A program made the translations under genes and the position numbers. Under the pieces are notes generated by a model. The model searched no databases and was not told the origin of the DNA. It was given only the letters and a program-made list of their open reading frames with translations. DNA of 64,000 nt from Mantamonas sphyraenae STR306 (lineage: Eukaryota; Protista; CRuMs), in assembly GCA_026936335.1 (NCBI GenBank), contig JAPMXV010000048.1, positions 1 to 64,000 of the forward strand, given 5' to 3'. Below, one piece after another: positions 2,965 through 64,000 of the stretch (the first letter of the stretch is position 1; each line of letters starts with the position of its first letter).

Positions 2965-5900
2965 TGAATGGTGTAGAGCACGTCGTCCATGTGCTTTCTG
3001 TGCCTGCTTCGGCCTCGCAATCGGTAGCTTTGAGCAAGAACGAGCTCGCTGAGAAGGTGGCTGCACTATCAGGCACGCTGTCACGCGGTGAACCCATGTG
3101 CTTGGCGGGGTTCCGCATGCAGACCAGCCCGTTCGAGTTTGGGTGTCTCTGCCTCCTCTGGACTGCATCTCAGCGAGCGTGTCTGCGCCTTTTTCTGTTG
3201 CGCGGGCCTCTCCTCTTGAAGGAGGTCTCAGAGGACACGAGCATCGTATGGGTCGTCTATGCTGCGATCTTGCAGCGGAGAGGGATGTCGCTTTGTCTGT
3301 TGCGGTGGAGATTTTGCTGACGAGGTGTTCTCGAGATCCATTGTGGTCTGTTGTTGCGCGCTGAAGGCAGGACTCGATGTCCATGTGCGAGGTGCAGGTG
3401 TGATGTAGGTGAGATCACCTGCGAGCTGGAGCCACCTGATAATCTCGACCAGGAGGGTCTGCATGTCAGGGGGTAACTGGGTTCTCCGCGTCATTTGTCG
3501 TTGTTGTTTTGGACCAGCCGGCGCAGTGCAGGGATTGCAATCCACGTCTCTATATCCGCAGCATGGAAACTTGACTGTGTGTGGATGGTGTGGTGTGCTG
3601 GCGACCGATGACCAGAGCGAGTGGTGCAGGGTGGTGCGGTGGATCGGAAAATCATCCTACTAGATATCGGCATAGTCATTCCAGGGGTCTGTCGGCATGG
3701 GCGGATGCCTGTTTGTGGCCAGCAGTCCTGTTCTGTTGGATGCGTCGTGTTTGTGGACACGGAGGCGCTCTTGTTGCGCAGAAAAAGCTGGATCATCGAC
3801 GGGAGGAGTTTGTCGGTGACCGTGTCCCAGCGCTCGCGGCAGTCAATCAAATCGTCGTCGTCGTCCGAATAGGAAGGAGGGACCCAAGGGAAGGGGAGAT
3901 CTTTCAGGCGGGAACGGAGGGCACGGTAGTCTGCGGTGCAGCGAGAGTACTCACGATCAAAGAGAACCGAGCCGAGCTCCACCACGTGGCCTCGTACGGA
4001 AACAGCTTGGTTGCGTCGATGGTGTCTTTGCCTTCCAAAACGGACAAGTACTTGACTTCTCTGGGCACGCGAGTTTTGGAACGCGAACGGTTTGCGTTGT
4101 TTGACGCGCGGCTCTTTGTGAGTGCTTTGAGAGTGCTGTGGTCGATGAGGTTTGCAAAAACGTGCGGGAGGTTGATGATCTCCCATTCGTGGAGCACTGT
4201 CCCTTGCACGCGTGTGGAGGGCCAGGAGTCCTTGCGGAGTTGCTGCAGGTGATCCAAGGGTCCATTGGATTCTGTGTTGCCAGCGGAGCCATGGCGGTCT
4301 TCCTCGTCGGACGAGTCCTCACTGACCTGCGGATGGGGGGAAAGATTCTGCAGCCGCCAGTGCAAGAGCCAGGCAAGTTTGAGTGCGAAGCGTGGGTACA
4401 CGTAGTGGTTGCGCACAGTCCAGGCCCTCTTCATACGAGCACGCCATTGTCGTGGTTCCATGATGAGGACAGATTCTTTGGCTGTGTCATAGGTGAGCAG
4501 GGAAAGGCGTTCTGAGCCATCAGGGCGGCGTCGAGATTGGCTGCAACAGGGCAGGTGGCCGGACAGAAGGGTTGTTGGCCATCCACGCAAAGGCGCAGGG
4601 TGCTCGCTGTTGTTCAAAGAGGAGCTTGAAGCGCGACCCGATGGCTTTGGATCCCACAGAAGAAGGCCGGCGTCGCTGTCGAAGCAGTGGATCCAAAGGA
4701 GTGGGGCGACAGATGCTTGTGTGTTCGGTTGCCGTCGATGTCTTGTGCATGTTGCTGCTGAGATAGGCACGTGGCGACATCCAGGCGGTCGCCGCAAAGC
4801 GGTACACGGCATGTGCAGCCAACTTGGCGACTTGCTTCTTCTGAGCGATGTGGTGGACCCATGAAACATGTGATAGCTCGGGCAATCGGCACGCCGTGGT
4901 GGGGGCTGCTCGGTCCGATCGAATCAGGCACTGTACACAATAGTCTGAGGTGACACTGTAGCCGTTCATGGCTTTGACATTGTGTTCCCACGCGTCGTGC
5001 TGTCGTTCGAGCAAGCCAACCAAGGAGTTCCGCCAGGCCTTGCGCAGCACTGTTCGCTCGCAGTCGTTCGTGTTGGCGGCTGCAGCGTCCTGATCTTGCT
5101 GAAAAGCGTGTGCATGAAGTTCATGGGCACGATGTAGCTCAGTTTCCAACAGAATTTGGAGCGGTAGGGGGTAATCGTGGAAGGGTTCGATGGACTCGAG
5201 CTTGTCGAAAACGGGCACGAGGACGTGTTCTTCCACGTCTTTGTACCAAGCGCCAAGTTTGCACAGCGGGACTACACCCACAAATGCCAAGCACGTGAGT
5301 ATGGCCAATTCGTCCTCAGACGCGCTGTCGCTCCTCGCCTGGGAACGAATTTCATCCGCAAACTGGCGAGCCTTTGTCAGGTTCTCCTGGTGCTCAGCAG
5401 TCACCCGCTGGGCAAGCAGAGCCGCCTTGCAGAGGGTCTGTGGATTGGTGGTGGCAATCAGACTCGAGCGCATCGACGGGAACTCGCGAAACCGTGTTGC
5501 GTTGGCACCGTGTTTGGGGTCCATCCAGAAGCAGATTAGTGTCTCCACAATATCGACCCTCTCCTGACTGTTGTTCTCAAGAAACGTTTGACAGTATTTG
5601 TTGATGACACTCTCTGGCTCAGAGGTGAGTTTGCAGCTCGAACCATGAACCCACAGCGGCTCCTTTTTGTTGCCTCCACGCTGGTGTAAAAGCTCTTCAA
5701 TGGACGACATCCAGTTCTCTGCGAGCGCTTCCAGTGTCTCTCTTTCCTGCTCATTCTCTTTGTCCAGCGAGAGCAGCTTGGCCTGAACAAGGGTGGCTGC
5801 CTCCAGCTCCACGCTCATCAAACGTCGCTCGTCAACTTCCAAAGCCGGTGTGCTGTCAATGCGAACATCCGTGAGGTGGAATGCAGGTCGAATGATATTG

Positions 5901-6762
5901 CGATTCATACCTCCATAGTAGGTCCAGGAGTGGCACCCAGTGTGTTCCCAGAGCACTGTGAGCGGGATCAGCCCCGAGAAACTTGCATAGACCACCAAAT
6001 CCCACTGGGCTGAAGACATGTTTGATGTACACACATATGCACTGTTGACAAATTGCCTCAATTTCTCGTAGGAGGTAAGCAGGGGCTCGGGAGGCGGGAG
6101 GTCCAGTGATGCTGAGGCGGCCGCCCACACGAGCGCTTTCACTTGACCAGGGGTTACCTCGCCGCCTTGATACTGTTGAAAAGCGGCAACTAGGTTGCTC
6201 TTGGGGTGCTTAGCATTGGGTCCTAGGTGTGTGAGCTCGTTCTTGTTGATATCTTCGATCAGCTCCAAGGTGATGCTCTCGTATGTGTGCTTGTCAGGCA
6301 GCTGGTGCTTTGAAGGTGAAGCAGGGGCCTGTTGGTCACCATTGGGCTGCAAGTAGTGGCGACGGGCACAGGATGTCCACACATGCGCGCATTCGGTACG
6401 TGTGAGTGCATGACCTGGGCCGGGATGGAGGTTGCAAGAGGGGAAACCCACCGTGCCGTTTGGGTCTCGGAGCTGGAGCTGGAGCTGGAGCTCGAAGATG
6501 CAGATGGGGTAGACTCTACCCGGGACCGCTTAGGTGCGTGGTCAGTTACAGGGTCAATGCTCTGCGGCTCCTCTTCTTGCTCTTGTTCTTGGTCCCCGAG
6601 CCGGATGGGCACTTGCTGCGCAGCCACCTGGACGCCAAATCGGCCACCCCCCTTGCGTCGCTGGTGCTTGGCGGACCTCTTGCGTTTACGTGATGCTGCA
6701 GGTCTATCTCTACGATGTGTGGCTCCCCAAACATTGCCCTCCTGTTGCTCACTGTTCTCCAT
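2965..6762 (-). CDS. Large orphan protein (>1000 aa when frames are joined); NLS-like N-terminus, CxxHx4Hx6C motif, duplicated internal helical domain; 3' end uncertain
   Basis: Fragments 6259-6870, 4520-6451 and 3904-4869 correspond to one 972-aa ORF in the other arm (60631-63549); 3491-4186 and 3228-3545 appear to continue it. Likely start MENSEQQ at 6762. Confidence 0.6.
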
Positions 6763-6904
6763 GGAGCAGAACAAAGGGCGGCTTTGGTGGGTTCTGCGCA
6801 ACTTGCTTGGCCCCTTTGTCCTCTTGCTCAACGTAATCAACGTATCGACGACGGAGCCCACAGCGCCCACGACTTGTGTGGTTCACAAGGAGGTGTACAC
6901 CTTT

Positions 6905-7262
6905 CACCCAATCAAGGTGGTGGGCCTGGTTGGACCTCGCCCGGGACCACTCTCATCGTCGGGTTCGTGTCGTTTCGCTCACCGCTTTCGATATCAGTGA
7001 GTCCTGGACCAAGTCCTGGGAGGACAGTTCCGCACATGTACCAACACACTCTTTGGTCACACACACTGTGGATTGTGATTGGTTTTGCGATGAAGCCTGG
7101 GCCCGGACCAGGTCCGGACCCACTGGTCATCGTAAAATCGGGTGTATTTTGATTTTTTGGCTTTTCATTTCACCTCATCAATTCGTGTGACTGGAGGTTT
7201 CGATGAAGGTCCAGTCCGGACCAAGTCCGGGACCACGAAACAAACCACAAACAGGGACCATA
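6905..7262. promoter_or_regulatory. Cluster of palindromic CGATGA...GGACC/GGTCC...TCATCG boxes between divergent genes
   Basis: 7083-7137 reads TTTTGCGATGA-agcctgggcccggaccaggtccggacccactgg-TCATCGTAAAA (11-bp inverted arms, 1 mismatch). Related boxes at ~6925-6960, ~7000-7022 and ~7198-7240. Confidence 0.6.
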
Positions 7263-7465
7263 CATGGACTACTGGTTGACAGATGGATGTGTCGACCTGT
7301 GTGGGCATGGAGGAAGCTCTGAGGGGCGTGGGAGCATCACTGTGGCCCTGTCGGTCCAACTTGGTCTGCAGCTCGTGGTTGCCCCGTCTGAGGCAACTCA
7401 ACGCGATTGCACTTTGCACGTCACAGTAATCCGCTCGATCACTCACAAGACGCAAACAAGCAATC

Positions 7466-10092
7466 ATGGACATCGATATCCCGGAAATCGACCCTGTCGA
7501 TGAGAGTGTTGGTGACATTGTCCTGGCAGACGAAACGAGCCAGCCCGATGCAGGTTCACAGCCCCACGACGAAGAAGGGCGCAAACGTGCACGTTCAGCA
7601 AGTATTGAGGAGTCGTACCAGGAGGACGAGTGGATTTCGACAGTTGCAGCGGCACTGCCCCAGCCAAAGAAACAGGCTCGCATTGACCTTGGTACGTGCC
7701 CCCCAAACGTCCACACACGGTTCCAAATTACGTGGTTGGTAAAACATAAAACACCTCTACAACAATAACTAACCCCCACGGGCATGGCGCATGGACGAAG
7801 TAGACGCGAGCGCCGTTTCAGACTCGACGCAGCACCTGGATCAGCCTTGCTCGTCATCCGCATCGGCTGGAGATGTTTGCAGAGCAACAGAGAGGCCATT
7901 GAGCAGGGATCAGAGGGAGCTTGTCGATTTGATAGTGGCCGCGACGCGAAAGAAGGACGCGGTGGGGCTTGTGATTGAGGCAGTGCCGGGTGCGGGCAAG
8001 TCGACTGTGATCAGGGTTATTGTGAAGGAAGTCCTCAGAGAAGAGGGTGGAGAGAATCGGTGGACGACCGACCGAGCTCTGTATGTGCTGGTGTTCAACC
8101 GCGCCAACGCGAACGATTTGAAGGAGGCACTCGAGCGAGCTGGAGTCAAGGTGGCGGCAAAGCGGAGTGACGATGGTGTGCACGTGTGCACTTTCCATTC
8201 CAAGGCCATGAGCGATTTGGGCAGTCATGCAAAGGGAGCGGTGACGTTTGATTCGAGCTCTTCGAGCTCGGTTCTTCCGAGATACTTTGTGCAGGTACTG
8301 TGCAGAGCGAGCGCTGACATGCAACAGGGCATGAAGATCGACGATGAGCGCATTGACTCGTACCTATGCGAAAACGTGACCAAGCTTACGAACGAATTTG
8401 TCAAACGAGCCGACGCGTCCAAGGCAAGCACCAACAACCAGGAAATTCGGGACATGTGTCAGAGACACTACCAAAACATTGTAAAGTTTGCCAAGCCTGT
8501 GTTGACACAGTGCTGTCAGCAGTATGCGCCGCTGGTCAGGAGCGTCGAGCAAAAGGTGCTGCGAACGCTGGTTGAGTTCTACAGCCAGGCTTGCATGCAG
8601 ATGAACATTGGCAACGACAAGAGTGAAGTATACCACATGATCAACACGGAACGCAATCTGCGCACTCACTCTGGACTGGAAAAAAAGGCGCTTGGGGCAG
8701 AGTTTGAGCGGGGCGTGCTGACCGAGCTCGTGTGCCTGGTGCTGAAGCCAGCCGAGCTGTTTGCCAACAACATGACAAGCATTGTGTCAATGCCAGATGC
8801 GGTGTACGTGGCAAACATCACAGGCGCAGATTCCTTGCCGCAGAAGCACATGGTGGCCCCTCTGCTCATTGTGGACGAAGCACAGGACTGCACTCCCGCC
8901 ATGATCGAATTTGCCCGCCGCATGACGGAAAAGAAGGGCAGCATACTTGCAGTGTTTGGCGACAAGCGCCAGGCCATCAACCTGTCACTAGGAGCGGCAC
9001 CAACGGCGCTTGCCACTCTGAAAGAGGAAGCCTCGAACCAGGGGATGCGAACGAACACCCTGGAGCTGAAACTCACACGTCGCGTGTTTTCCAAGATGGC
9101 ACCAGTGCTGGAGACGTTGGGCACCCCAATCGAGTTTGACAAGGACGTCGTTGCGCAAGGTACGTTTGGGCCGCGCGAGGAGCTGCCCCGAGCGACCACG
9201 GCAGAAAACGATGACCTATTGATCGTACGCAACAACCAGGAGCAGTGTGTGTTGCTGGCTGTGTACGACCAATTCTTCCTTGCAGACAATCGCGGCCACG
9301 AGTACGCCCAAGTTTGCACTGAGCTCCAGTGTCGGTGGAGCAAACACGGGGGCTCAGAAGAACATACGAATGTGGAAGAGTGGCGATCTACCGCGCAGGG
9401 GTTCGTCGAACGCGAGTTGCAGGTGATGCTCGACCCGAAGAAGTTGCCGACACGGAGGGCGTTGGCCGCACAGCCGTGGTCGGTCGCTTCGACACTCGCC
9501 AGGACGTCCAGCAGTTCTTCAGGAGCATCAGAGGTGCGAACCGCAGGGTGTCGATGATGTTGCGAACTGTGGCTCTTGTGCGAGGGTGGCGGTACTTGCA
9601 GCGGGATGATCTCGTTCATGAGCAGGGGGTACACGAACTCCAGCAGCGCTTCAACGACTTTATGCACGCTCCAGCAGACGCCATGGATGGCAACGGACTC
9701 TTCAAGATCCAGATCTCGACGGTACACAAAGCTAAGGGGCCGATCGCGGGAATGTGCACATCCTCGGACTCGTTGACCTGTTTGCCAGCACGCAAGGTAA
9801 CGCGGACGAGTCGTTGAACCTCGTTTACGTTGCTTTGACTCGCTGCAAGCGTGGGTTGTTTCTCTACCCGTTGCTGGATGTCGACGAAACTGACGATGAA
9901 GACAAGCTCTGCGAGACGCTGAGCAAACAGACCAACGTGAGAATGTTGAAGGCCCTGGATTTACTCATGCAAGGATCCAAGGCGGTTGAAAACGAAGGCT
10001 ATATTGGGCCCACCACAAAGACGTTTGTGGCTGCACTCCGCAAGGCCATCTCTCACAGAGAAAAACAAAGCGCGGAGATGATTGTCGAATGA
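7466..10092 (+). CDS. UvrD/FBH1-like superfamily 1 DNA helicase; two exons (7466-7691, then from 7801 or 7804); two 1-bp frameshifts near 9432 and 9739
   Basis: Motifs AVPGAGKST (I), LVFNRANA (Ia), CTFHS, LIVDEAQD (II), FGDKRQAI (III), STVHKAKG (V), LVYVALTRCK (VI). Intron with GTACGT donor at 7692, ACTAAC branch point and phase-1-compatible AG at 7800 or 7803. Confidence 0.88.
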
Positions 10093-10192
10093 ACGTGCCT
10101 CTGCTCTAGTGTATTGTAGACGATGCCAAACACCGCATTGTGGCTCCATGGCTTCAGACACTGTGAGCCAGCCCATGAGCGTTCGACCAACT

Positions 10193-10549
10193 GGTTTTCA
10201 CGATGAAGCTCAGGTCCGGACCCCGGGTCATCGTCAGGAACCACCCAAGGTCGTGTGGCGAAAAAAAAAAGTTGTATATATATACCATCCTATGAATTTT
10301 TTTTTTTTTGGAGAGGTGGGGTGGTCTTGCCTCGGCTGGGTGAGAAGTGTGGTTTTCACGATGAAGCTCAGGTCCGGACCCCGGGTCATCGTCAGGAACC
10401 ACCCAAGGTCGTGTGGCGAAAAAAAAAAGTTGTATATATATACCATCCTATGTTTTTTTTTTTTGAGAGGTGGGGTCGGCTGGGTGAGAAGTGTGGTTTT
10501 CACGATGAAGCTCGAGTCCGGACCCCGGGTCATCGTCAGGAACCACCCA
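10193..10549. repeat. Tandem repeat (units start 10193, 10351, 10495) of a palindromic box plus A10/TATATA/T12 tract; candidate replication origin
   Basis: Unit: GGTTTTC-ACGATGA-agctca-GGTCCGGACC-ccggg-TCATCGT-caggaaccacccaaggtcgtgtggcg-A10-gtt-GTATATATATAC-catcctatg-(aa)T12. Confidence 0.9.
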
Positions 10550-10710
10550 TCGGTGAAGATGTCCAAGGTCATGTGAACAAAAACTGTCTGTATCGTATTG
10601 TTGTGGTGTTGTATTGTACTTTGGTAACGTTAAACCAATTGGTAGTCTCGCGAGCAGATGTGCCTCGCAATGCTCCAGCTGTGCCAAGATAACGTTGTGT
10701 AGTTCGCCAA

Positions 10711-11319
10711 ATGACCCATCAGTCAATTAAAGGTGATTCTGAAAACAAGTGCTCTGGTTCGATGCCGAGTGGTGCAATCGGTTCGTTGAACACACCAACG
10801 ATGAACGATGGCGATGATGACCACAACATTGTTGTCGATGACAACGATGCAGACTACCGCAGCGGGTACGAACTGGAAGAAGGAATAGATGATGAGGCCG
10901 AGGAAGATAGGGGTGAAACCATCAGTGGAGTAGGGGGGTACGGGTTCCGTTTTATTGATGACGAATTTGAGGAGGAGGAGATTATGGACTCGGAGGAGGA
11001 GGAGGAGATGAGGCAGTTTATTGCGGATGACGACGAGTTTTTGGAGTGCATTGAGCTTACAAGCAGTGACGAGGAGGACGAGAACCGTTGGACGAGTGAG
11101 GAAGATGAGGACGATCAGTGGTACTACAACGAGGGGTCTGATGAGGAGGACAACTACGGCTATGCCAACTGGAGTGACTTGGATGTGGATGTTGACGATT
11201 TAAACAGCTCATGCTACTCCGGAAGCGATGTGGACGACTCTGGAGATGACGATGACGAGATAATTCTCCCCCGCCGGCGCAACCGACGTTCCATCCCAGA
11301 CGATGAAGCAGAAGCATAA
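10711..11319 (+). CDS. Small highly acidic (D/E-rich) protein with basic C-terminal patch; true start may be 10801
   Basis: Acidic ORF containing FIDDEFEEEE and FIADDDE, ending PRRRNRRSIPDDEAEA. Identical in both arms. Confidence 0.75.
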   Translation: MTHQSIKGDSENKCSGSMPSGAIGSLNTPTMNDGDDDHNIVVDDNDADYRSGYELEEGIDDEAEEDRGETISGVGGYGFRFIDDEFEEEEIMDSEEEEEMRQFIADDDEFLECIELTSSDEEDENRWTSEEDEDDQWYYNEGSDEEDNYGYANWSDLDVDVDDLNSSCYSGSDVDDSGDDDDEIILPRRRNRRSIPDDEAEA

Positions 11320-11442
11320 AAAGAAGGTGGGCTTTATAATTTCCTTGTTCTTGACACAGTGATGCTAAACAGTACGGGCACCAGCTCGCAAAAGTCAGCC
11401 TAGCTGGCGTATGTGTGTGTGTGATGAGTTGGTACCTCCTGG

Positions 11443-11490
11443 TTGATGAAGCAGCGTGCAGGACCAGGTCCGGACACCAGCGGCATCGGT
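11443..11490. promoter_or_regulatory. Degenerate copy of the palindromic box upstream of the UL9-like gene (mirror at ~56010-56058)
   Basis: TTGATGAAGC-agcgtgca-GGACCAGGTCCGGAC-accagcgg-CATCG. Confidence 0.5.
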
Positions 11491-11573
11491 TGGAGCACTC
11501 GATAGGCGAGTATGTTTTCCTGTTCGTGATGCGCCGTCACCCCCAACCAATCAAGATTTCGCTCAGTGGGGAT

Positions 11574-14500
11574 ATGCAGGGGTCTGACAGCCGGTCTGAA
11601 GCCAAGAATGAGGCTACAGTCGATGGCATGGAGCTGGAAACTGACACTGGACTGCCGTCGGCCGAGAGCACCCTCGCTGTGCACAACCATCCGGCCACAC
11701 AAGTGGAGCCTGTGAGGGGTAGCAACGAGCCTGTGAGGGGTAGCAACGAGGCTGTGAATGAGATTGTAGTCGATGTAGACAACACTACAGTCAAAGTTGG
11801 GATTGGGGAAGACGCTGAAGAGCCGTCGAGCACAGCGCAAAGAAAAGGCAAGGGTAAACTCGGCACGGGCTTTGGTATGTTCGAACGCAGGTACAGGAAA
11901 AGAGGTGGCCCCGTGTACGTACAAATCGGCGAAGAGACGGCGCGCATGGGTATTGGCAACATGGAGTACCCCGGGTACTGTGAGAAAATGCTGCGATGGT
12001 ACCAGGAGCATGCAGCGGAGAACGTCGTGCCTCTGGCTGAGGCCACGTATGCCCAAGACATGGATCACAAACTGGTAGTTCACTTCCGGTATGATGGCGA
12101 TGAAGAGAACGACGGCGTTTACGTGACGCATACCAAGAAAGTGGTGCTCGAGTTTCTCCAAAAGCTGGTCGGCGAATACGAGGACGAGGACATCGAGTTC
12201 ATGAGCGTTATGTACACCATCATGGTCCGTCGCTCTGCTGACAAAGACGATCCATCTGTGTGCGTCCAGCTGGTTGTGGATTTGCGTGTGGATCGGGACA
12301 CCGCAGAGCGCACGCTGGGGATCCTGAAGGAAATTGAGAAGAAGCTAGGTGGCGTCATGGTGTGCTCTGAAATGCTTCTTCCCGAACGACACTCACCTTC
12401 CATGTGTGGCTTGAACAGCGACCACCCTGTGACTGTCCTTCAGAGATTCAAGGGGACAGTGCAGCAAAAGGCTTGGAACAAGTCGGTGCGGAAATTGGTG
12501 ATGAGCGAGGATTACAGCAAGCTACTGACAGCGTACAGTTCCACCAGTGCTCTGTGGCCGTACACCATGCAAGCTGAACAAACGTGTCCTCCTGTGCTGG
12601 CAAACTGGCTGCTGCACAGGCTCGACACGTCCGACGAGCAGAGCACAATGTCCCTGGACAAGTACGTGTCCACGTTTCTCACCCAGCATGCTCAACACGA
12701 AGGTTTGCGCTATTTGGGGAGGATCTTGGAGGAGACTGCGCGTCTGATACCAACTCGCCTTCCGAGCGACTCTTGCAACACTCAGACAGCCACAGACACG
12801 ATGAACACAGACGAAAGCGGAGCTTTTGACAAGACCTGGGAGGAAGCAGATGTACAGGTGCGCCGCTCGGCGTTTGGCAACGGTGCGGTGCGGCTAATCA
12901 TCACCGACCAAGAGGAGCGGACACAAATCCGCGTCACCTCTCTCTCGTTTGCCAAAGGTGTACGTGTATGTACGGAAAGACGAAAACTGGGCTGTGTGTG
13001 GAGGGAATCCTCGGCACAAGGTGTCCCAGGTACCAAAGTCGCCCGATCTGTGCAACTTGGACCTGGACACGCTGCTTGTGCTCATGAGCGCCATCCTGTA
13101 CAACATACAATCACAGCCCGCCCGAACGATGGCGTCGGACTTGGAGAAAGAAAGGGCTGAGAAGGATTGGCTGGATGGTCTCAAGGAGAAGATCCATCAG
13201 CAGGATGTGTTTGTCCATGCCGGTCGCGCAGACGACAAGGAGGTGTGGGCCAAAATCTCGCAAGACATGGATCATCTGCGCCGTGACTACGAAGGGCAGG
13301 ACGATATCGAGATTGAGGATGCAGAAGGCAATTTGCCGATGCTTGTTTATTTTGTGTGCGCACCAACGGCTCTGGGTAAGTCGCTTCTCCTCGCCCGTCT
13401 GCACTCCGATTACCTTATGCATGCCACAGATGGAGACGACAAAGAATCGGCCTTTTTGCAGTCCTCGCTGAGCATCATCTACCGGACTGCCTTGCTGCCA
13501 AGCCTGATGGACAACCTCCCGGGCGTCGTCTCGTACGATGACATCCGCAACGGCAAGCGCAGAAAGGAAGATGTGCAACACGTCGTCTCAACAATGGAGA
13601 GCATGCTGCGCCATGTGTACCACGAAAACATGGAGCCTGAGTTTGTCAATCTCGACGAGATCGCGCGGCTACCGAGCAAGCTCCTGGAACAAACGTTGGC
13701 ACACAACGCACCGGTTAATGCGACCCTCGGCTGTATTTTGCGCACATTCATCACAGCCAAGATGCTGTACTTTGCCTCGGCGGAGTTGACGCCGGAGACG
13801 GTGTCGTTTGGGGTTTCCACCATCCGCAGGCTGGTTCCCAACCGCAATCTGCGTTTCCGTGTCATCGTAGTCGGACGAGAAAAAGCCACGTGGCATGGAC
13901 GTGGTCATCCACCGCTCACAGGAGACGTTTCTGCAGCGCATGATCGCCGAATGGCAGCACCGTCCACAGGCTGACCTGGAGTTTCTCCGCGACTACCGCA
14001 TCTTCTCTGCAGTGGATGACCTTGAACGCTGCTGCGAGCTCTACACCGAAAACCAAGCCGCTGTGACAGACCGCAAACCCACCGTGTACTTGGTAAAGGG
14101 CAAGGGAGTGGACAAAACGGAACAGGACCGGAGCGTCCGCAACCTGAACGCCATGAGCAAGAGTACATTCAAGCGGATTCCGCTGACCGATTTTCACAAG
14201 GCACAAAGCGAGAGAAAGCAAGGGCTTTTCCGCAATATGGCCAGGAGCCAATCGGCAAAAGGTTGCGCAGATCACGACGCGACGTTTGTGACGAGCAAAA
14301 TCGTTGAAGGAGTGAGCGTCGAGCCCACGGCGTTCGATTCATTCTCTTTTCTGCGGAAACCCGACTTAACATCACCCATGATGGTTGTGCAGATGGTAAA
14401 CCGTGTGCGAAACGTCCCGAACGATGTGAACGAGGCGTTCTTGCGCTCGCAGATGAACTTGGTCTCCGTCGGACGGCACAAAGATTACGTCGCGAATCTG

Positions 14501-15080
14501 GAGCTTCTTTTCAAGCACAAAAAGGACTTTGACCAGTACGCCAAGCGTCAGCATGCCAAGGATAGGTTGAGCAACAAGAGACTGTTTGGAAGTCCCCATA
14601 ACGCCCAGCGGGACATGCACATGGGATCCTCAGACCCGTGCGATGTAGCATTCATGGTAGAGTTGCTGGCGAAATGGAGCGCAGCAGAAAGCTCTTCGTT
14701 TGATGCTCAGCAACTTGAGCGAGGCCTAGCGCACAACGGGCAGAACGTGTACTATTTCGACGCCCCAATCCCCCTGAGGGACACAGATGTTGATGGTCAT
14801 GCTCGCATCGTCCTGGAACCATACGAAAGCAACGTCCATGTCTGGACTGTGGACGGTGAAGTCACCCTACCCCAGCTACCAGTGTACGACGTCAACGTGC
14901 CGTACGGGCCGTCAAACTCGCAGGACGAGTTGAACGCCACAGATCGACCTTCCAAGCGTGATCGAAGCGATGAAGACGCCCGAGGGGTGAGTTTGATGAC
15001 AACGAGAACCCCGTCGCAAAACACCAGCGGGTTGAGAAGGATCAGGGGGAGCCAGACAGCAGTGAGGAGTTCAATGACCT

Positions 15081-15116
<36 letters not shown>

Positions 15117-16449
15117 CAGTAGCAGTAGCAGCTCGGGACACAAGCTCGACACAACATCAGATCTGTGGCGCTTGTACGTATCCACCGTCAAGCTTCGGTG
15201 CCAACGATATACACCGCCCACTTCAAAAGCGGAAAACAATGTACGGTGGTACGAGAAAAGGCGCCGCGGGGTCCAGCGGTTGGAGAAGGTCAACGAGAAG
15301 CTCCTGCGCCAGGTCGCGCAAAAGGTGGAGGAGTATCGTACCAACGACAAGTCAGAGGAGAAGTACAAGGAAGAATTGCAAAAGAACATGAAAACAGCCG
15401 AAGAAGGGGATGATGAGTACAGCGGACCGCAACCGGACATGGTGGACTTGTACTGCGGGATGTCACCTGCAGAACAACTGGGTATCTGGGAAGCGATCCC
15501 CTACCGTGAGTTCGTGGCTTTGTTGGACTCTCCCAAGGAGCACTTATCATCCAGTGGCTGGTATTCAATCCAAGACAACCGTTGCAAACGCCTTCAGAAC
15601 CTTGCCCTTCTGACATGCTCACAGAAAACGCTTCAATCTGCAGAGAAACTGAGCAGGAGAACTGTCAGGGAGACCTCGAAGCACACAAATGCGCTCACGT
15701 CGCGCACAAACACGTCACCACCGCACTATAGCGACGACAAGGAAGTTCTGGACCGCATTCTGGGTTTTCTGGGAATACCAACAACCGACGAGCTCCGGCA
15801 ACTGGAGAAGGCGCCGGAAGACATTGTGTTATGTGCGTACAACACACCGAACACGAACGACGACGATCACGACGACGACGACGACGACGACGACGACTCG
15901 ACGGACAGGCAAGTGGTCTCGGCAGAAACCCTGGCCGAGATCCGTGACGTTGTCAACACACATGTTGACTCGGCCTCAGATGGCTGCTTGCTGGCCACCA
16001 AGAAGGTGGACAAAGAATTCACACTGTCTGCTGTGAAAACACTTCTATCGAAAGCTGGTGTGCCCATCATGAAGAGATCGAAGAAAGATGGTGACGGTGC
16101 ACAGCCAAAATACGCCACGTACATACTGGCAGGTAAGCAACTGTTCGGCTGGGCCCAAGCGGCCAAGAATCTGCGGCGCCACTGGAAATGCACGCAGCAG
16201 GACAATAGTCAGTATTCCTCTGGCCGGGGAGAGGCGAGCGCCCAAGGTCAATGTCCGTGTAGCTTCCACGAGCTGGACCTTGCCAAGAAGTTTCGCCGCG
16301 GTGCGCACAGGTCAAACGATATCTACCTGGAAAATCCAACCGCCGACGATGAAACACAAGTGTGGAGTGAGAAGCAGCAGGCACAACTGGATAGGCAGCA
16401 GCACATGAGTTCGAGCAACTTGACAGGCTTTGAAATGATAGAGACATGA
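11574..16449 (+). CDS. UL9-like origin-binding SF2 helicase protein (left copy; frameshifts near 12940, 13880 and 14985)
   Basis: Four ORF fragments (581, 341, 498, 425 aa) that correspond to the single 1678-aa ORF in the right arm. Confidence 0.75.
11706..11758 (+). repeat. 21-bp coding tandem repeat (EPVRGSN x2 plus partial)
   Basis: gagcctgtgaggggtagcaac repeated twice, then gaggctgtga. Confidence 0.85.
15081..15132 (+). repeat. (AGC/AGT)n microsatellite encoding poly-Ser in the UL9-like protein (mirror ~52368-52420)
   Basis: cagcagcagc...agtagcagtagc. Confidence 0.9.
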
Positions 16450-16593
16450 GCCCAGCGCCTTGATTGGAGCGCTCGACGAACCCGCACCGTAGTCAAGGAG
16501 CAGCAGCAACCACAATAACAAAACATAAAGAATCTTTCGCAACCGCTTGCTTTTTGTTGGATACCGTCAGGTGTGCAGTCGCTGTCCCACATC

Positions 16594-17961
16594 TCACTGC
16601 AGCAAATGAAGGAGACAGAGCCAAGTGAGGAGGAGCAGGATCAAATGAACATGGTTGTGAGTTGCGTCGCTGGAAGTGGGTGCTGCCGTTGGAGTTGGGG
16701 TTGGGGTCGAGCTGTCCGGTGTGGGCGACGACGGCTCACTCTTGCCAACCACCGAGAGCGAGCAGTACCGGGTCGACGTGCTCGCATCCATGGTAAAGCC
16801 AAACACCACGATGGAGTCACCTGCAAGTGTCATGCCAGACACGTAGTGGTCTGGAGCCCAGGTTTTCCACCACTGGAACGAGCCGGTCGCGTCGTACCGC
16901 AGCACGGCCGAGATGGGCGTGGTTGTCGTGCCCTGCAGATACCAGGTTGCGTAGTACACTCCCGTGGAATCTACATCGACCATTGCAGGTCGGGGGAACT
17001 GGTTGTCGATCGACGCATTGGTACGATGCCAGTTCAGTGTTCCAGCAAAATCTGTTTGGTACAGCGTGGCGCGCCACCCAGAGTTCTCGGCCTTGTAGGC
17101 GACAGTGTACAGCTTGCTAGACGCACTGTCTACAGCGATGCTCTGGGCGTCGTAGTCTACCATCGTTGCCCCTCCTGTGGGCGAAGACGAAGGGTAGGCC
17201 ACGCTCTGGAGCACACCTGCAGACGACACTCGTGCCACAAACATCCGCGTCGCAAATCCAGACGGTTTCGGGTACCCTGGTATGTTGGTGGATGCACCGC
17301 CCGCTGCAAAGATGTCTCCAGAGCTCGCATCGACGCCCACCTCGCGCACTTGGTCTTTGCTGTCGCCACTTCCAAACACCGTGGTCCACTTTACCGTGCC
17401 GTTCGACGCACGCCGTTGCACATACATCGTTACCGTGTTGGCTGTTGTGTTGGCGATGTGTCCAACCAGAACCAGGTCTGACGCTCCCCACGAAGCCATG
17501 CGCAGCCCACTCTGGCTCATGTCCGAATCCGCCATCTTCCACACCACCGTGCCGTTGGGCATGACGCGACTGAGTTCTGTCTGCCCGCTCGTCAGGGATG
17601 GGTTGGTGGAGATGCGACCAAGCACAAACACAGAGCCGTCCTGCAGCACCACGTCTGACCCGAATGACCGGAAGCGAACGCTCCACTCCGTCGTGCCGTT
17701 CAGGGCCATCTTGGCCAGGAAGCCGCGCGCAACTCCTGGTCCCGAGTATGAAAGCTGGTTGGCAAGCGTGGTGTATGCTGTGTCTACAACATACAGCGCC
17801 TGCGCACTGGCGTCCCAACGCACGCCCGAGCGTGTCACCGGAGACGAAGCAAGCCCAGAAAAGTGGTCGTTGCACCCGGGAAAGGTGTACGTCTGTACAG
17901 CCAGTGTGGGTGTCGCACACAGAAGCGTAATGGTCAAGATGAGAAGGAAGAAACGCGGCAT
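16594..17961 (-). CDS. Secreted beta-propeller (SBBP-like) surface protein with P/T/S stalk and hydrophobic C-terminus (GPI-like)
   Basis: Signal peptide MPRFFLLILTITLLCATPTLA. Repeats such as NGTVKWTTVFGSGDSKDQVREVGVDASSGDIFAAG. PTPTPT stalk and LILLLLTWLCLLHLLQ tail. Confidence 0.8.
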   Translation of the reverse strand: MPRFFLLILTITLLCATPTLAVQTYTFPGCNDHFSGLASSPVTRSGVRWDASAQALYVVDTAYTTLANQLSYSGPGVARGFLAKMALNGTTEWSVRFRSFGSDVVLQDGSVFVLGRISTNPSLTSGQTELSRVMPNGTVVWKMADSDMSQSGLRMASWGASDLVLVGHIANTTANTVTMYVQRRASNGTVKWTTVFGSGDSKDQVREVGVDASSGDIFAAGGASTNIPGYPKPSGFATRMFVARVSSAGVLQSVAYPSSSPTGGATMVDYDAQSIAVDSASSKLYTVAYKAENSGWRATLYQTDFAGTLNWHRTNASIDNQFPRPAMVDVDSTGVYYATWYLQGTTTTPISAVLRYDATGSFQWWKTWAPDHYVSGMTLAGDSIVVFGFTMDASTSTRYCSLSVVGKSEPSSPTPDSSTPTPTPTAAPTSSDATHNHVHLILLLLTWLCLLHLLQ

Positions 17962-22602: not shown

Positions 22603-22651
22603 CTTGAAATACCACCGTTGTTGTGTTGCATGCACAAGCGCTGCTGGTCCC

Positions 22652-39821: not shown

Positions 39822-39993
39822 CGACTCGACCCGGAAGACACCTTCAATGAACAATCCGAGACATACCAAAAGTGTACAGCCAACACCTCAGGTGCACAGC
39901 GACGGTAGTCCAGACCCATGGCACAACCACATCCTCCAGGCGCTGGACGACGATGCATAAGAATAGACAGGCATGTCTGCAAAATCATATTCC

Positions 39994-44849: not shown

Positions 44850-44898
44850 GGGACCAGCAGCGCTTGTGCATGCAACACAACAACGGTGGTATTTCAAG

Positions 44899-51600: not shown

Positions 51601-51632
<32 letters not shown>

Positions 51633-52384
51633 GATCGTCGTCGTTCGTGTTCGGTGTGTTGTACGCACATAACACAATGTCTTCCGGCGCCTTCTCCAGT
51701 TGCCGGAGCTCGTCGGTTGTTGGTATTCCCAGAAAACCCAGAATGCGGTCCAGAACTTCCTTGTCGTCGCTATAGTGCGGTGGTGACGTGTTTGTGCGCG
51801 ACGTGAGCGCATTTGTGTGCTTCGAGGTCTCCCTGACAGTTCTCCTGCTCAGTTTCTCTGCAGATTGAAGCGTTTTCTGTGAGCATGTCAGAAGGGCAAG
51901 GTTCTGAAGGCGTTTGCAACGGTTGTCTTGGATTGAATACCAGCCACTGGATGATAAGTGCTCCTTGGGAGAGTCCAACAAAGCCACGAACTCACGGTAG
52001 GGGATCGCTTCCCAGATACCCAGTTGTTCTGCAGGTGACATCCCGCAGTACAAGTCCACCATGTCCGGTTGCGGTCCGCTGTACTCATCATCCCCTTCTT
52101 CGGCTGTTTTCATGTTCTTTTGCAATTCTTCCTTGTACTTCTCCTCTGACTTGTCGTTGGTACGATACTCCTCCACCTTTTGCGCGACCTGGCGCAGGAG
52201 CTTCTCGTTGACCTTCTCCAACCGCTGGACCCCGCGGCGCCTTTTCTCGTACCACCGTACATTGTTTTCCGCTTTTGAAGTGGGCGGTGTATATCGTTGG
52301 CACCGAAGCTTGACGGTGGATACGTACAAGCGCCACAGATCTGATGTTGTGTCGAGCTTGTGTCCCGAGCTGCTACTGCTACTG

Positions 52385-52420
<36 letters not shown>

Positions 52421-56789: not shown

Positions 56790-56951
56790 TTGGCGAACTA
56801 CACAACGTTATCTTGGCACAGCTGGAGCATTGCGAGGCACATCTGCTCGCGAGACTACCAATTGGTTTAACGTTACCAAAGTACAATACAACACCACAAC
56901 AATACGATACAGACAGTTTTTGTTCACATGACCTTGGACATCTTCACCGAT

Positions 56952-57306
56952 GGGTGGTTCCTGACGATGACCCGGGGTCCGGACTCGAGCTTCATCGTGA
57001 AAACCACACTTCTCACCCAGCCGACCCCACCTCTCAAAAAAAAAAATCATAGGATGGTATATATATACAACTTTTTTTTTTCGCCACACGACCTTGGGTG
57101 GTTCCTGACGATGACCCGGGGTCCGGACCTGAGCTTCATCGTGAAAACCACACTTCTCACCCAGCCGAGGCAAGACCACCCCACCTCTCCAAAAAAAAAA
57201 AATTCATAGGATGGTATATATATACAACTTTTTTTTTTCGCCACACGACCTTGGGTGGTTCCTGACGATGACCCGGGGTCCGGACCTGAGCTTCATCGTG
57301 AAAACC
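56952..57306. repeat. Mirror copy of the tandem palindrome/AT-tract array
   Basis: Reverse complement of 10193-10549, with small differences in the homopolymer tracts. Confidence 0.9.
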
Positions 57307-57406
57307 AGTTGGTCGAACGCTCATGGGCTGGCTCACAGTGTCTGAAGCCATGGAGCCACAATGCGGTGTTTGGCATCGTCTACAATACACTAGAGCAGAG
57401 GCACGT

Positions 57407-60034
57407 TCATTCGACAATCATCTCCGCGCTTTGTTTTTCTCTGTGAGAGATGGCCTTGCGGAGTGCAGCCACAAACGTCTTTGTGGTGGGCCCAATATAG
57501 CCTTCGTTTTCAACCGCCTTGGATCCTTGCATGAGTAAATCCAGGGCCTTCAACATTCTCACGTTGGTCTGTTTGCTCAGCGTCTCGCAGAGCTTGTCTT
57601 CATCGTCAGTTTCGTCGACATCCAGCAACGGGTAGAGAAACAACCCACGCTTGCAGCGAGTCAAAGCAACGTAAACGAGGTTCAACGACTCGTCCGCGTT
57701 ACCTTGCGTGCTGGCAAACAGGTCAACGAGTCCGAGGATGTGCACATTCCCGCGATCGGCCCCCTTAGCTTTGTGTACCGTCGAGATCTGGATCTTGAAG
57801 AGTCCGTTGCCATCCATGGCGTCTGCTGGAGCGTGCATAAAGTCGTTGAAGCGCTGCTGGAGTTCGTGTACCCCCTGCTCATGAACGAGATCATCCCGCT
57901 GCAAGTACCGCCACCCTCGCACAAGAGCCACAGTTCGCAACATCATCGACACCCTGCGGTTCGCACCTCTGATGCTCCTGAAGAACTGCTGGACGTCCTG
58001 GCGAGTGTCGAAGCGACCGACCACGGCTGTGCGGCCAACGCCCTCCGTGTCGGCAACTTCTTCGGGTCCGAGCATCACCTGCAACTCGCGTTCGACGAAC
58101 CCCTGCGCGGTAGATCGCCACTCTTCCACATTCGTATGTTCTTCTGAGCCCCCGTGTTTGCTCCACCGACACTGGAGCTCAGTGCAAACTTGGGCGTACT
58201 CGTGGCCGCGATTGTCTGCAAGGAAGAATTGGTCGTACACAGCCAGCAACACACACTGCTCCTGGTTGTTGCGTACGATCAATAGGTCATCGTTTTCTGC
58301 CGTGGTCGCTCGGGGCAGCTCCTCGCGCGGCCCAAACGTACCTTGCGCAACGACGTCCTTGTCAAACTCGATTGGGGTGCCCAACGTCTCCAGCACTGGT
58401 GCCATCTTGGAAAACACGCGACGTGTGAGTTTCAGCTCCAGGGTGTTCGTTCGCATCCCCTGGTTCGAGGCTTCCTCTTTCAGAGTGGCAAGCGCCGTTG
58501 GTGCCGCTCCTAGTGACAGGTTGATGGCCTGGCGCTTGTCGCCAAACACTGCAAGTATGCTGCCCTTCTTTTCCGTCATGCGGCGGGCAAATTCGATCAT
58601 GGCGGGAGTGCAGTCCTGTGCTTCGTCCACAATGAGCAGAGGGGCCACCATGTGCTTCTGCGGCAAGGAATCTGCGCCTGTGATGTTTGCCACGTACACC
58701 GCATCTGGCATTGACACAATGCTTGTCATGTTGTTGGCAAACAGCTCGGCTGGCTTCAGCACCAGGCACACGAGCTCGGTCAGCACGCCCCGCTCAAACT
58801 CTGCCCCAAGCGCCTTTTTTTCCAGTCCAGAGTGAGTGCGCAGATTGCGTTCCGTGTTGATCATGTGGTATACTTCACTCTTGTCGTTGCCAATGTTCAT
58901 CTGCATGCAAGCCTGGCTGTAGAACTCAACCAGCGTTCGCAGCACCTTTTGCTCGACGCTCCTGACCAGCGGCGCATACTGCTGACAGCACTGTGTCAAC
59001 ACAGGCTTGGCAAACTTTACAATGTTTTGGTAGTGTCTCTGACACATGTCCCGAATTTCCTGGTTGTTGGTGCTTGCCTTGGACGCGTCGGCTCGTTTGA
59101 CAAATTCGTTCGTAAGCTTGGTCACGTTTTCGCATAGGTACGAGTCAATGCGCTCATCGTCGATCTTCATGCCCTGTTGCATGTCAGCGCTCGCTCTGCA
59201 CAGTACCTGCACAAAGTATCTCGGAAGAACCGAGCTCGAAGAGCTCGAATCAAACGTCACCGCTCCCTTTGCATGACTGCCCAAATCGCTCATGGCCTTG
59301 GAATGGAAAGTGCACACGTGCACACCATCGTCACTCCGCTTTGCCGCCACCTTGACTCCAGCTCGCTCGAGTGCCTCCTTCAAATCGTTCGCGTTGGCGC
59401 GGTTGAACACCAGCACATACAGAGCTCGGTCGGTCGTCCACCGATTCTCTCCACCCTCTTCTCTGAGGACTTCCTTCACAATAACCCTGATCACAGTCGA
59501 CTTGCCCGCACCCGGCACTGCCTCAATCACAAGCCCCACCGCGTCCTTCTTTCGCGTCGCGGCCACTATCAAATCGACAAGCTCCCTCTGATCCCTGCTC
59601 AATGGCCTCTCTGTTGCTCTGCAAACATCTCCAGCCGATGCGGATGACGAGCAAGGCTGATCCAGGTGCTGCGTCGAGTCTGAAACGGCGCTCGCGTCTA
59701 CTTCGTCCATGCGCCATGCCCGTGGGGGTTAGTTATTGTTGTAGAGGTGTTTATGTTTTACCAACCACGTAATTTGGAACCGTGTGTGGACGTTTGGGGG
59801 GCACGTACCAAGGTCAATGCGAGCCTGTTTCTTTGGCTGGGGCAGTGCCGCTGCAACTGTCGAAATCCACTCGTCCTCCTGGTACGACTCCTCAATACTT
59901 GCTGAACGTGCACGTTTGCGCCCTTCTTCGTCGTGGGGCTGTGAACCTGCATCGGGCTGGCTCGTTTCGTCTGCCAGGACAATGTCACCAACACTCTCAT
60001 CGACAGGGTCGATTTCCGGGATATCGATGTCCAT
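57407..60034 (-). CDS. UvrD/FBH1-like SF1 helicase, intact copy (767-aa main exon plus acidic/NLS first exon)
   Basis: All SF1 motifs lie in one ORF, 57407-59710. Upstream exon MDIDIPEID...KKQARIDL. Confidence 0.9.
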
Positions 60035-60738: not shown

Positions 60739-63700
60739 ATGGAGAACAGTGAGCAACAGGAGGGCAATGTTTGGGGAGCCACACATCGTAGAGATAGACC
60801 TGCAGCATCACGTAAACGCAAGAGGTCCGCCAAGCACCAGCGACGCAAGGGGGGTGGCCGATTTGGCGTCCAGGTGGCTGCGCAGCAAGTGCCCATCCGG
60901 CTCGGGGACCAAGAACAAGAGCAAGAAGAGGAGCCGCAGAGCATTGACCCTGTAACTGACCACGCACCTAAGCGGTCCCGGGTAGAGTCTACCCCATCTG
61001 CATCTTCGAGCTCCAGCTCCAGCTCCAGCTCCGAGACCCCAAACGGCACGGTGGGTTTCCCCTCTTGCAACCTCCATCCCGGCCCAGGTCATGCACTCAC
61101 ACGTACCGAATGCGCGCATGTGTGGACATCCTGTGCCCGTCGCCACTACTTGCAGCCCAATGGTGACCAACAGGCCCCTGCTTCACCTTCAAAGCACCAG
61201 CTGCCTGACAAGCACACATACGAGAGCATCACCTTGGAGCTGATCGAAGATATCAACAAGAACGAGCTCACACACCTAGGACCCAATGCTAAGCACCCCA
61301 AGAGCAACCTAGTTGCCGCTTTTCAACAGTATCAAGGCGGCGAGGTAACCCCTGGTCAAGTGAAAGCGCTCGTGTGGGCGGCCGCCTCAGCATCACTGGA
61401 CCTCCCGCCTCCCGAGCCCCTGCTTACCTCCTACGAGAAATTGAGGCAATTTGTCAACAGTGCATATGTGTGTACATCAAACATGTCTTCAGCCCAGTGG
61501 GATTTGGTGGTCTATGCAAGTTTCTCGGGGCTGATCCCGCTCACAGTGCTCTGGGAACACACTGGGTGCCACTCCTGGACCTACTATGGAGGTATGAATC
61601 GCAATATCATTCGACCTGCATTCCACCTCACGGATGTTCGCATTGACAGCACACCGGCTTTGGAAGTTGACGAGCGACGTTTGATGAGCGTGGAGCTGGA
61701 GGCAGCCACCCTTGTTCAGGCCAAGCTGCTCTCGCTGGACAAAGAGAATGAGCAGGAAAGAGAGACACTGGAAGCGCTCGCAGAGAACTGGATGTCGTCC
61801 ATTGAAGAGCTTTTACACCAGCGTGGAGGCAACAAAAAGGAGCCGCTGTGGGTTCATGGTTCGAGCTGCAAACTCACCTCTGAGCCAGAGAGTGTCATCA
61901 ACAAATACTGTCAAACGTTTCTTGAGAACAACAGTCAGGAGAGGGTCGATATTGTGGAGACACTAATCTGCTTCTGGATGGACCCCAAACACGGTGCCAA
62001 CGCAACACGGTTTCGCGAGTTCCCGTCGATGCGCTCGAGTCTGATTGCCACCACCAATCCACAGACCCTCTGCAAGGCGGCTCTGCTTGCCCAGCGGGTG
62101 ACTGCTGAGCACCAGGAGAACCTGACAAAGGCTCGCCAGTTTGCGGATGAAATTCGTTCCCAGGCGAGGAGCGACAGCGCGTCTGAGGACGAATTGGCCA
62201 TACTCACGTGCTTGGCATTTGTGGGTGTAGTCCCGCTGTGCAAACTTGGCGCTTGGTACAAAGACGTGGAAGAACACGTCCTCGTGCCCGTTTTCGACAA
62301 GCTCGAGTCCATCGAACCCTTCCACGATTACCCCCTACCGCTCCAAATTCTGTTGGAAACTGAGCTACATCGTGCCCATGAACTTCATGCACACGCTTTT
62401 CAGCAAGATCAGGACGCTGCAGCCGCCAACACGAACGACTGCGAGCGAACAGTGCTGCGCAAGGCCTGGCGGAACTCCTTGGTTGGCTTGCTCGAACGAC
62501 AGCACGACGCGTGGGAACACAATGTCAAAGCCATGAACGGCTACAGTGTCACCTCAGACTATTGTGTACAGTGCCTGATTCGATCGGACCGAGCAGCCCC
62601 CCACCACGGCGTGCCGATTGCCCGAGCTATCACATGTTCATGGGTCCACCACATCGCTCAGAAGAAGCAAGTCGCCAAGTTGGCTGCACATGCCGTGTAC
62701 CGCTTTGCGGCGACCGCCTGGATGTCGCCACGTGCCTATCTCAGCAGCAACATGCACAAGACATCGACGGCAACCGAACACACAAGCATCTGTCGCCCAC
62801 TCCTTTGGATCCACTGCTTCGACAGCGACGCCGGCCTTCTTCTGTGGGATCCAAAGCCATCGGGTCGCGCTTCAAGCTCCTCTTTGAACAACAGCGAGCA
62901 CCCTGGCGCCTTTGCGTGGATGGCCAAACAACCCTTCTGTCCGGCCACCTGCCCTGTTGCAGCCAATCTCGACGCCGCCCTGATGGCTCAGAACGCCTTT
63001 CCCTGCCTCACCTATGACACAGCCAAAGAATCTGTCCCTCTCATGGAACCACGACAATGGCGTGCTCGTATGAAGAGGGCCTGGACTGTGCGCAACCACT
63101 ACGTGTACCCACGCTTCGCACTCAAACTTGCCTGGCTCTTGCACTGGCGGCTGCAGAATCTTTCCCCCCATCCGCAGGTCAGTGAGGACTCGTCCGACGA
63201 GGAAGACCGCCATGGCTCCGCTGGCAACACAGAATCCAATGGACCCTTGGATCACCTGCAGCAACTCCGCAAGGACTCCTGGCCCTCCACACGCGTGCAA
63301 GGGACAGTGCTCCACGAATGGGAGATCATCAACCTCCCGCACGTTTTTGCAAACCTCATCGACCACAGCACTCTCAAAGCACTCACAAAGAGCCGCGCGT
63401 CAAACAACGCAAACCGTTCGCGTTCCAAAACTCGCGTGCCCAGAGAAGTCAAGTACTTGTCCGTTTTGGAAGGCAAAGACACCATCGACGCAAACCAAGC
63501 TGTTTCCGTACGAGGCCACGTGGTGGGAGCTCGGCTCGGTTCTCTTTGATCGTGAGTACTCTCGCTGCACCGCAGACTACCGTGCCCTCCGTTCCCGCCT
63601 GAAAGATCTCCCCTTCCCTTGGGTCCCTCCTTCCTATTCGGACGACGACGACGATTTGATTGACTGCCGCGAGCGCTGGGACACGGTCACCGACAAACTC

Positions 63701-64000
63701 CTCCCGTCGATGATCCAGCTTTTTCTGCGCAACAAGAGCGCCTCCGTGTCCACAAACACGACGCATCCAACAGAACAGGACTGCTGGCCACAAACAGGCA
63801 TCCGGCCCATGCCGACAGACCCCTGGAATGACTATGCCGATATCTAGTAGGGATGATTTTCCGATCCACCGCAACCAACCCTGCACCACTGCGCCTCTGG
63901 TCATCGGTCGCCAGCAACCCACACCCATCCACACACAGTCAAGGTTTTCCATGCTGGCGGGATATAGAGACGTGGATTGCAATCCTGCACTGCGCCGGCT
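60739..64000 (+). CDS. Second copy of the large orphan protein (frameshifted after ~62600, truncated by window)
   Basis: 972-aa ORF 60631-63549 continued by 63128-63847; mirror of 2965-6762. Confidence 0.6.

Follow-up and report, generated by a model that had tools for sequence, protein, structure and literature searches.

Does the large inverted repeat that fills most of the first 64,000 nucleotides of contig JAPMXV010000048.1 (the whole of this stretch is hereafter called the window) exist as a palindrome in the cells of a protist, or was it made during library preparation or assembly? Two near-identical arms of at least 24 kb face each other across a unique spacer of 12.5 kb, here also called the hinge, in DNA that proves to be nuclear. 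Our favoured reading, to which we give an even chance, is a genuine large palindrome, very young or continuously homogenised, that was formed in protist nuclear DNA by a fold-back or template-switch inverted duplication. From the sequence, such a palindrome and a chimeric or mis-assembled join are inseparable.

Comparison of the window with itself (self-blastn) returned one inverted pair, in which positions 3516-27504 match positions 64000-39997 over 24,016 aligned columns, at 99.821% identity (E = 0), with 4 mismatch columns and 36 gap openings. The left arm (3516-27504, + strand) is the copy of lower quality, and the right arm (39997-64000, - strand) is the clean one, with all its long open reading frames (ORFs) intact. 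Because the right arm is cut by the end of the window, the outer limit 3516/64000 is a window edge and not the end of the repeat, so that the arms measure at least 24 kb. The mirror register (i + j = 67516) places the expected partner of positions 1-3515 at 64001-67515, outside the window, and this left flank (1-3515) probably prolongs the left arm, its counterpart lying in the sequence that follows the window. An earlier note on this DNA had described an inverted repeat of at least 24 kb around a unique 12.5-kb spacer, with inner ends at 27501 and 40001. The layout is borne out, and these two coordinates are exactly where perfect ungapped identity stops; BLAST adds 3 nt through one gap. The spacer (27505-39996; 12,492 bp) is unique, and no inverted self-similarity was found when it was looked for there.

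Both inner boundaries are sharp. Past either of them, local alignment scores are 12-24, compared with 11.7-25 for shuffled sequences, indicating that similarity ends abruptly. An old and decayed inverted repeat was considered and rejected, as remnant inverted similarity was sought within the spacer and none was found. The inverted triplication of an origin-dependent inverted-repeat amplification (ODIRA) includes a third, direct copy, and self-BLAST did not reveal such a copy within the window.

The nature of the few differences between the arms is informative. We counted 39 of them. Compared with the right arm, the left one is short of one or more bases at 25 sites (deletions) and has additional ones at 11 (insertions); the other 3 events are of the substitution type, and two of these are shifts at the edge of a homopolymer. 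Nearly all lie in or beside short homopolymers. The spacer provides an internal control for real divergence, namely an in-frame tandem duplication (28420-30379, - strand) within an ORF of 2483 amino acids (aa). Its two copies (28420-29374 and 29424-30379) are 97.3% identical, with 299 aa at 97% identity, and differ by 23 substitutions (12 transitions and 11 transversions) and 3 gap columns. The ratio of substitutions to gaps, 4/36 in the arms versus 23/3 in the control duplication, is thus very different (Fisher p = 1e-10). As the control has diverged by substitutions and the arms by indels, the differences between the arms are technical. The arms are therefore probably identical in the underlying DNA, the 0.18% difference being due to errors in the left-arm consensus of an assembly made from long reads; their near-identity, as first proposed, was if anything understated, since what separates them are indels of the sequencing type.

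The errors are not evenly shared. All 20 frame-shifting differences that fall inside ORFs leave the right-arm frame open and the left-arm frame broken, the frames concerned being those of 704, 537, 491, 1675, 767 and 936 aa. The density of left-arm differences also climbs with distance from the hinge: it is 0.3 per kb at 24000-27505, 0-1.5 per kb in each bin from 5000 to 24000, 9 per kb at 4000-5000 and 28.9 per kb at 3516-4000. A patch rich in errors, in the outermost visible part of the left arm (3516-4901), holds 23 of the 39 differences, and the 936-aa ORF, which is open in the right arm (60739-63549), is broken 11 times in its left copy. The left arm thus has a poorer consensus than the right arm, and the one-sidedness of the frame-shifts, together with a patch of 1.7-2.9% error, indicates that fewer reads went into its building or polishing than into those of the right arm and the spacer. 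Beyond the patch, the left flank carries an intact leucine-rich-repeat (LRR) gene at 622-1851, so that the flank is of good quality there; homopolymer run-length statistics, also applied to positions 1-3515, are an insensitive method, with z = -0.06 for a bin known to be bad.

Some repeats within the arms can be added to these observations. The only indels between the arms that are not of 1 nt are at 15869 (mirror 51632), where (ACG)2 faces (ACG)3, and at 20678 (mirror 46821), where there is one extra GT. These changes of microsatellite unit may not be read errors but true variation, between the copies or between alleles. A (CAG)17 microsatellite (15081-15132 and 52369-52420) is of equal length in both arms and, in the 1675-aa orphan ORF (ORFan), codes for 19 consecutive serines.

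Is the window native nuclear DNA? The strongest indication comes from the spacer, which contains a stand-alone gene for an NPC1 N-terminal domain (38169-38883, - strand). It is predicted to be spliced, with exon 1 at 38883-38770, an intron at 38769-38655 and exon 2 at 38654-38169. Its product matches the Pfam family NPC1_N, of the sterol-binding type (E = 2.5e-23), and has exactly one relative, a complete 273-aa Mantamonas plastica protein of EukProt (P0177), at 58% identity. When that protein was searched against the window by tblastn, its residues 17-45 and 48-208 were found in two frames, 121 nt apart. Direct reading of the DNA shows a 115-nt intron with canonical GT-AG ends, starting with GTATGT and finishing with a pyrimidine tract and CAG. 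The gene model ends after ...SCN, without the membrane tail of the M. plastica relative, and an extra 3' exon may exist.

Codon usage ties the remainder of the window to this gene. A codon model trained on the right-arm ORFs alone picked the correct frame for every gene of the spacer and the flank, and relative synonymous codon usage is correlated between arm and spacer genes (r = 0.93) and between arm genes and the flank gene (r = 0.75). This common usage indicates that arms, spacer and flank belong to one genome. Because the spacer holds a spliced NPC1_N gene, the window is nuclear eukaryotic DNA, probably of a Mantamonas-like (CRuMs) protist; it is not human DNA. A giant-virus origin, which the density of ORFans had suggested, was rejected, given that the NPC1_N gene is spliced, that codon usage is uniform and that no viral hallmark was seen.

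The inner boundaries of the arms coincide with the 3' ends of the two copies of a 704-aa ORFan, which we call the hinge gene. Both copies are complete and stop one codon past the arm boundary. The left copy (25394-27508, + strand) ends with ...TGG GTA GCA GGG TGA, its last base lying 4 nt beyond the boundary, and the right copy (39994-42108, - strand) ends with ...TGG GTA GCG AGG TAA, its TAA being just beyond it. An alternative genetic code, raised by the frame that stays open after the TGA at 27506, was rejected, as TGA, TAA and TAG all terminate confident ORFs. Beyond 27501/40001, 8 of 11 nt agree without a gap, after which similarity is gone; 3-4 bases (AGG/GAGG) are common to both sides and are a candidate microhomology. 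At both edges of the spacer (27509-28279 and 38884-39993), none of the six frames is coding, so that neither breakpoint cuts a gene. The hinge gene is without relatives by word search, in IMG/VR and in the metagenomes of the Joint Genome Institute (JGI), and no homologue was found that would show which junction is the native one.

The inner boundaries (27501-27510 and 39991-40001) also resemble 5' splice donors, with GTGAGG at 27505-27510 on the left and GTAAGG on the right, and these motifs provide the TGA and TAA stops of the two hinge-gene copies. They could be (i) due to chance, (ii) rearrangement microhomology, or (iii) true donors that splice the hinge copies to different downstream exons.

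How could such a structure have arisen? We infer a fold-back event, in which a 3' end that had broken or stalled at one side of the present spacer would have paired, by an inverted microhomology of a few bases (around AGG or GGTRAGG), with a site of the same molecule situated 12.5 kb further back. DNA synthesis would then have copied, in reverse, all the sequence proximal to the pairing site. The expected product would be an arm, a single-copy loop (the spacer) and an inverted arm, with arms that may extend far past the window, and the identity of the arms could result either from the youth of the event or from homogenisation.

This anatomy is that of fold-back duplications described elsewhere, whether constitutional in humans (PMC3907307) or induced in yeast (PMC10622511), which also have long inverted copies, an axial spacer of normal copy number (0.8-70 kb; 12.5 kb here), abrupt junctions, with a few bases of inverted microhomology (a candidate one here), and arms that are identical when newly formed. 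In the human series, all 21 sequenced cases have a single-copy spacer, of 766-70,466 bp, which is below 15 kb in 20 of them, and 13 of 18 junctions show a microhomology of 2-8 bp (Hermetz et al., 2014; PMC3907307); the unique 12,492-bp spacer falls within this range. The distal loss, telomere healing and dicentric intermediate that define these duplications lie, in contrast, outside our 64-kb view, and we deal here with a free-living protist in which the event of origin was not observed.

The palindromes of mammalian sex chromosomes, such as P1-P8 of the human Y (PMC6790999), are a second point of comparison. They too have arms of tens of kb with more than 99.9% identity, a unique spacer and intact arm genes, and the arms studied here are 99.82% identical as assembled and effectively 100% identical if indels of the read type are disregarded. 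Such a layout would be expected to lead to gene conversion between the arms and to inversion of the spacer. The sex-chromosome palindromes are, however, old, conserved across species and maintained by conversion (PMC6790999), whereas the absence of substitutions here fits a brand-new event equally well.

Several results argue for a real fold-back palindrome. Its main features are present: the two copies, each 24 kb or longer, are inverted, the 12.5-kb spacer between them is single-copy, and the boundaries are very sharp, without any decayed similarity on their far side. The DNA is native, as judged from the NPC1_N gene with its M. plastica orthologue and from the codon usage common to arm, spacer and flank. 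Breakpoints that spare genes would be favoured by selection on a real rearrangement and would be rarer if breaks were random and made in vitro, and a random ligation chimera would not join in inverted order two points 12.5 kb apart. The whole-unit (ACG) and (GT) changes at 15869 and 20678 point in the same direction, such changes being commoner as real variation than as read error. Finally, the genome of M. sphyraenae (25 Mb, 59% GC, with mostly mono-exonic genes and about 66 small chromosomes; PMC10492846) was sequenced from bulk unamplified DNA (~90 ug), by PacBio RS II (106-112x) with additional Illumina reads, FALCON serving for the assembly and Racon and Pilon for its polishing (PMC10492846). 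The window is in keeping with the general style of this genome, and if this published library is its source, amplification by multiple displacement (MDA) is removed as a route to the inverted join. MDA-HiFi assemblies of Diphylleia and Collodictyon were considered as the source and are unlikely, since HiFi reads should not give about 3% of indels and the one protein match is to Mantamonas.

Other results weigh against a real palindrome. The left junction (27504/27505) has no independent support, as the sequence gives no sign that more than one molecule carried the join. There is no credible substitution in 24 kb of arms, which is also what one locus assembled twice would give, and the left arm is systematically the worse copy, in its frame-shifts as in its error-rich patch. 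The argument drawn from the unamplified library is conditional on the window coming from the published M. sphyraenae assembly, an assignment drawn from one protein of 58% identity and from genome style, and the outer ends of the arms, with any terminal deletion or telomere, are beyond the window.

The most serious alternative, which has a sizeable chance, though less than an even one, of being correct, is that the locus is single in the genome, consisting of the spacer and the right arm, and that the assembler drew on the same pool of reads to append the left arm. The join at 27504/27505 would then come either from one or a few chimeric molecules or reads, such as an inverted MDA chimera or another template-switch product, or from mis-threading of the assembly graph. 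The spectrum of differences between the arms (36 indels and 3 substitution-type events, versus 23 substitutions and 3 gaps in the control) is what such a duplicate should show, but differences limited to read errors are expected equally for a young real palindrome. In the same way, the confinement of all 20 frame-shifts to the left arm and the growth of error from the hinge up to 2.9% look like a thinly covered extension; this asymmetry was considered as a proof of artefact and discarded as non-diagnostic, because reads are steered to the better copy during mapping and polishing, be the second one real or not. A microhomology of a few bases at the join would suit in-vitro template switching equally well.

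Artefacts of this shape are well documented in amplified libraries. In MDA long reads, 60-70% of the reads are chimeric, as against 0.8% of bulk high-fidelity (HiFi) reads, and inverted joins make up as many as 91% of the chimeras, strand displacement by phi29 in vitro yielding the same inverted anatomy (bioRxiv 10.64898/2026.06.11.730069). Palindromic reads from whole-genome amplification map back within one read length and cause inverted duplications in assemblies (Pacasus, PMC6218980). The inverted chimeras of MDA (Lasken and Stockwell, 2007, as cited in the same preprint) and the palindromic reads of PMC6218980 are like our structure in their inverted near-point join, unique loop and differences consisting of read errors only. 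They nevertheless differ from it in that MDA chimeras arise only in amplified libraries, whereas the one Mantamonas genome published so far was made from unamplified DNA, and that palindromes due to missed adapters have no loop; in unamplified PacBio data, palindromic reads amount to ~0.5% and are mostly missed adapters, hence without a 12.5-kb loop (PMC6218980), and no amplification took place if the source is M. sphyraenae (PMC10492846). Moreover, assemblers usually drop or split lone chimeric reads at a coverage of about 100x, the true left neighbour of the spacer would compete at full depth, and both breakpoints fall outside coding sequence, all of which makes the artefact less probable. 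The two readings that survive are thus the alternatives which the earlier note had itself listed, i.e. a fork or template-switch inverted duplication and an amplification or long-read chimera.

It is far less probable that the structure is an inverted-repeat centromere in the style of fission yeast or Candida tropicalis, with a central core between homogenised inverted arms on a tiny chromosome. The geometry would suit it, and the ~66 small chromosomes reported for M. sphyraenae have unknown centromeres (PMC10492846), but most of the would-be core codes for proteins: it comprises a 7.4-kb ORF, a membrane ORF and the NPC1_N gene, all of which have a normal codon bias and 53-58% GC. Long intact ORFs also fill the arms, and stretches rich in AT or free of genes are absent; long ORFs of normal codon bias take up roughly three quarters of the spacer and the greater part of the arms.

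An old functional inverted-repeat (IR) system of the plastid type (IR-SSC-IR, around a small single-copy region) or the herpesvirus type (IRs-Us-TRs), or a composite element that mobilises host genes, can hardly be right, as it has in its favour the geometry alone (arms of ~10-25 kb and a flippable spacer of ~12-20 kb), against which stand the spliced nuclear gene with its protist orthologue in the spacer, the codon usage shared by arms and spacer (r = 0.93) and the gene content. The guanine-plus-cytosine (GC) content is 51-59% along the window and 56% overall, ARAGORN found no transfer RNA (tRNA) gene in the window, and no Rfam family, ribosomal RNA (rRNA) included, was matched on either strand at the gathering threshold. 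Pfam scans of 39 ORFs returned UvrD helicase, SET, NPC1_N, LRR_6 and otherwise weak matches only; among the scanned ORFs there was no plastid, capsid, terminase, polymerase, glycoprotein, Herpes_*, transposase or integrase domain, and a sequence search of PDB likewise gave no plastid, capsid, terminase, polymerase, transposase or integrase protein. The plastid comparison therefore fails on its rRNA operon, its tRNA genes, its proteins (ndh, ycf1, psaC) and its AT-rich DNA, and the herpesvirus comparison on core and virion genes and on relatives in IMG/VR, where nothing related was found; the resemblance to both, which had been drawn from the layout, does not hold. A composite transposon was rejected because the arm ORFs include no transposase, integrase or recombinase and the composition of the cargo is not foreign to the arms. 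The suggestion that host-like spacer genes could be mobilised as a unit is equally abandoned, since with one codon usage throughout, the whole window is host DNA.

The other genes of the window are mostly long ORFs without any family match, and its large ORFans have no sequence relatives in PDB. The right arm carries eight intact ORFs (704, 537, 305, 491, 1675, 202, 767 and 936 aa), totalling 16,875 bp of open frame. Besides the NPC1_N gene, the spacer contains the 2483-aa ORFan (28280-35731, - strand) and a 379-aa membrane ORF (36623-37762, - strand). The 2483-aa ORFan is built of a repeating module: in addition to the ~1-kb tandem duplication, it holds older copies of the unit that are ~39% identical, and it has no Pfam match or sequence relative in PDB.

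The 767-aa product of the right arm is a UvrD-like superfamily 1 (SF1) helicase (57407-59710, - strand), whose broken copy lies at 7791-9817 (+ strand). An exhaustive HMMER search of 1.84 billion representatives found only distant SF1 helicases (best E = 2.8e-11), and no relatives were obtained by word search or by scans of IMG/VR and JGI. Together with the 1675-, 936- and 704-aa ORFans, the helicase shows that this gene neighbourhood is lineage-specific. More generally, the arm genes have no near relatives in IMG/VR, in JGI metagenomes or in protein sets of 1.84 billion representatives or 5.8 billion clusters, and exact 34- and 37-nt words of the window are absent from IMG/VR, JGI metagenomes and GTDB genomes. 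The flank gene (622-1851, - strand), of the RNI-type LRR family (LRR_6, E = 3e-18), has the strongest codon-bias score in the window.

An intergenic tandem repeat with a unit of 157/158 bp is present in about 2.3 copies at 10192-10549 and at the mirror position 56951-57307; Tandem Repeats Finder gives 2.4 copies at 10192-10549 and 1.8 at 57024-57307. Its core consists of A10, GTTGTATATATATAC and T12, beside a GC-rich inverted motif.

What do these results mean for the organism? Whether the palindrome is real or an artefact, the ~36 indel errors of the left arm break five genes (those of the 936-aa, helicase, 1675-aa, 491-aa and SET ORFs), and the broken left-arm ORFs should not be annotated as pseudogenes. 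If the join is an artefact, at least ~24 kb in the reference assembly of a phylogenetically important protist are a false duplication, and the numbers of genes, the copy numbers called and the synteny in that region need correcting. If the join is present in cells, as we infer under the fold-back palindrome, about a dozen lineage-specific genes would be doubled and the spacer would be able to invert; it might flip back and forth, and the arms might be kept homogeneous. It is even conceivable, though unlikely, that the palindrome spans a replicon from end to end, a mini-chromosome or chromosome arm then being a stable fold-back isochromosome of a deep-branching CRuMs protist with a 12.5-kb hinge that recombination between the arms can flip; its size would be about 67.5 kb if the register i + j = 67516 marks the contig ends, and dozens of lineage-specific genes would be present in double dose. 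Large palindromes that carry genes, and inverted duplications of the fold-back kind, are familiar from animals, fungi and cancer genomes, and a real structure would be of a known type, new only for an unexplored lineage. It would nevertheless provide a clean gene-bearing palindrome, freshly formed or actively homogenised, in CRuMs, a eukaryotic supergroup whose chromosome biology is almost unknown.

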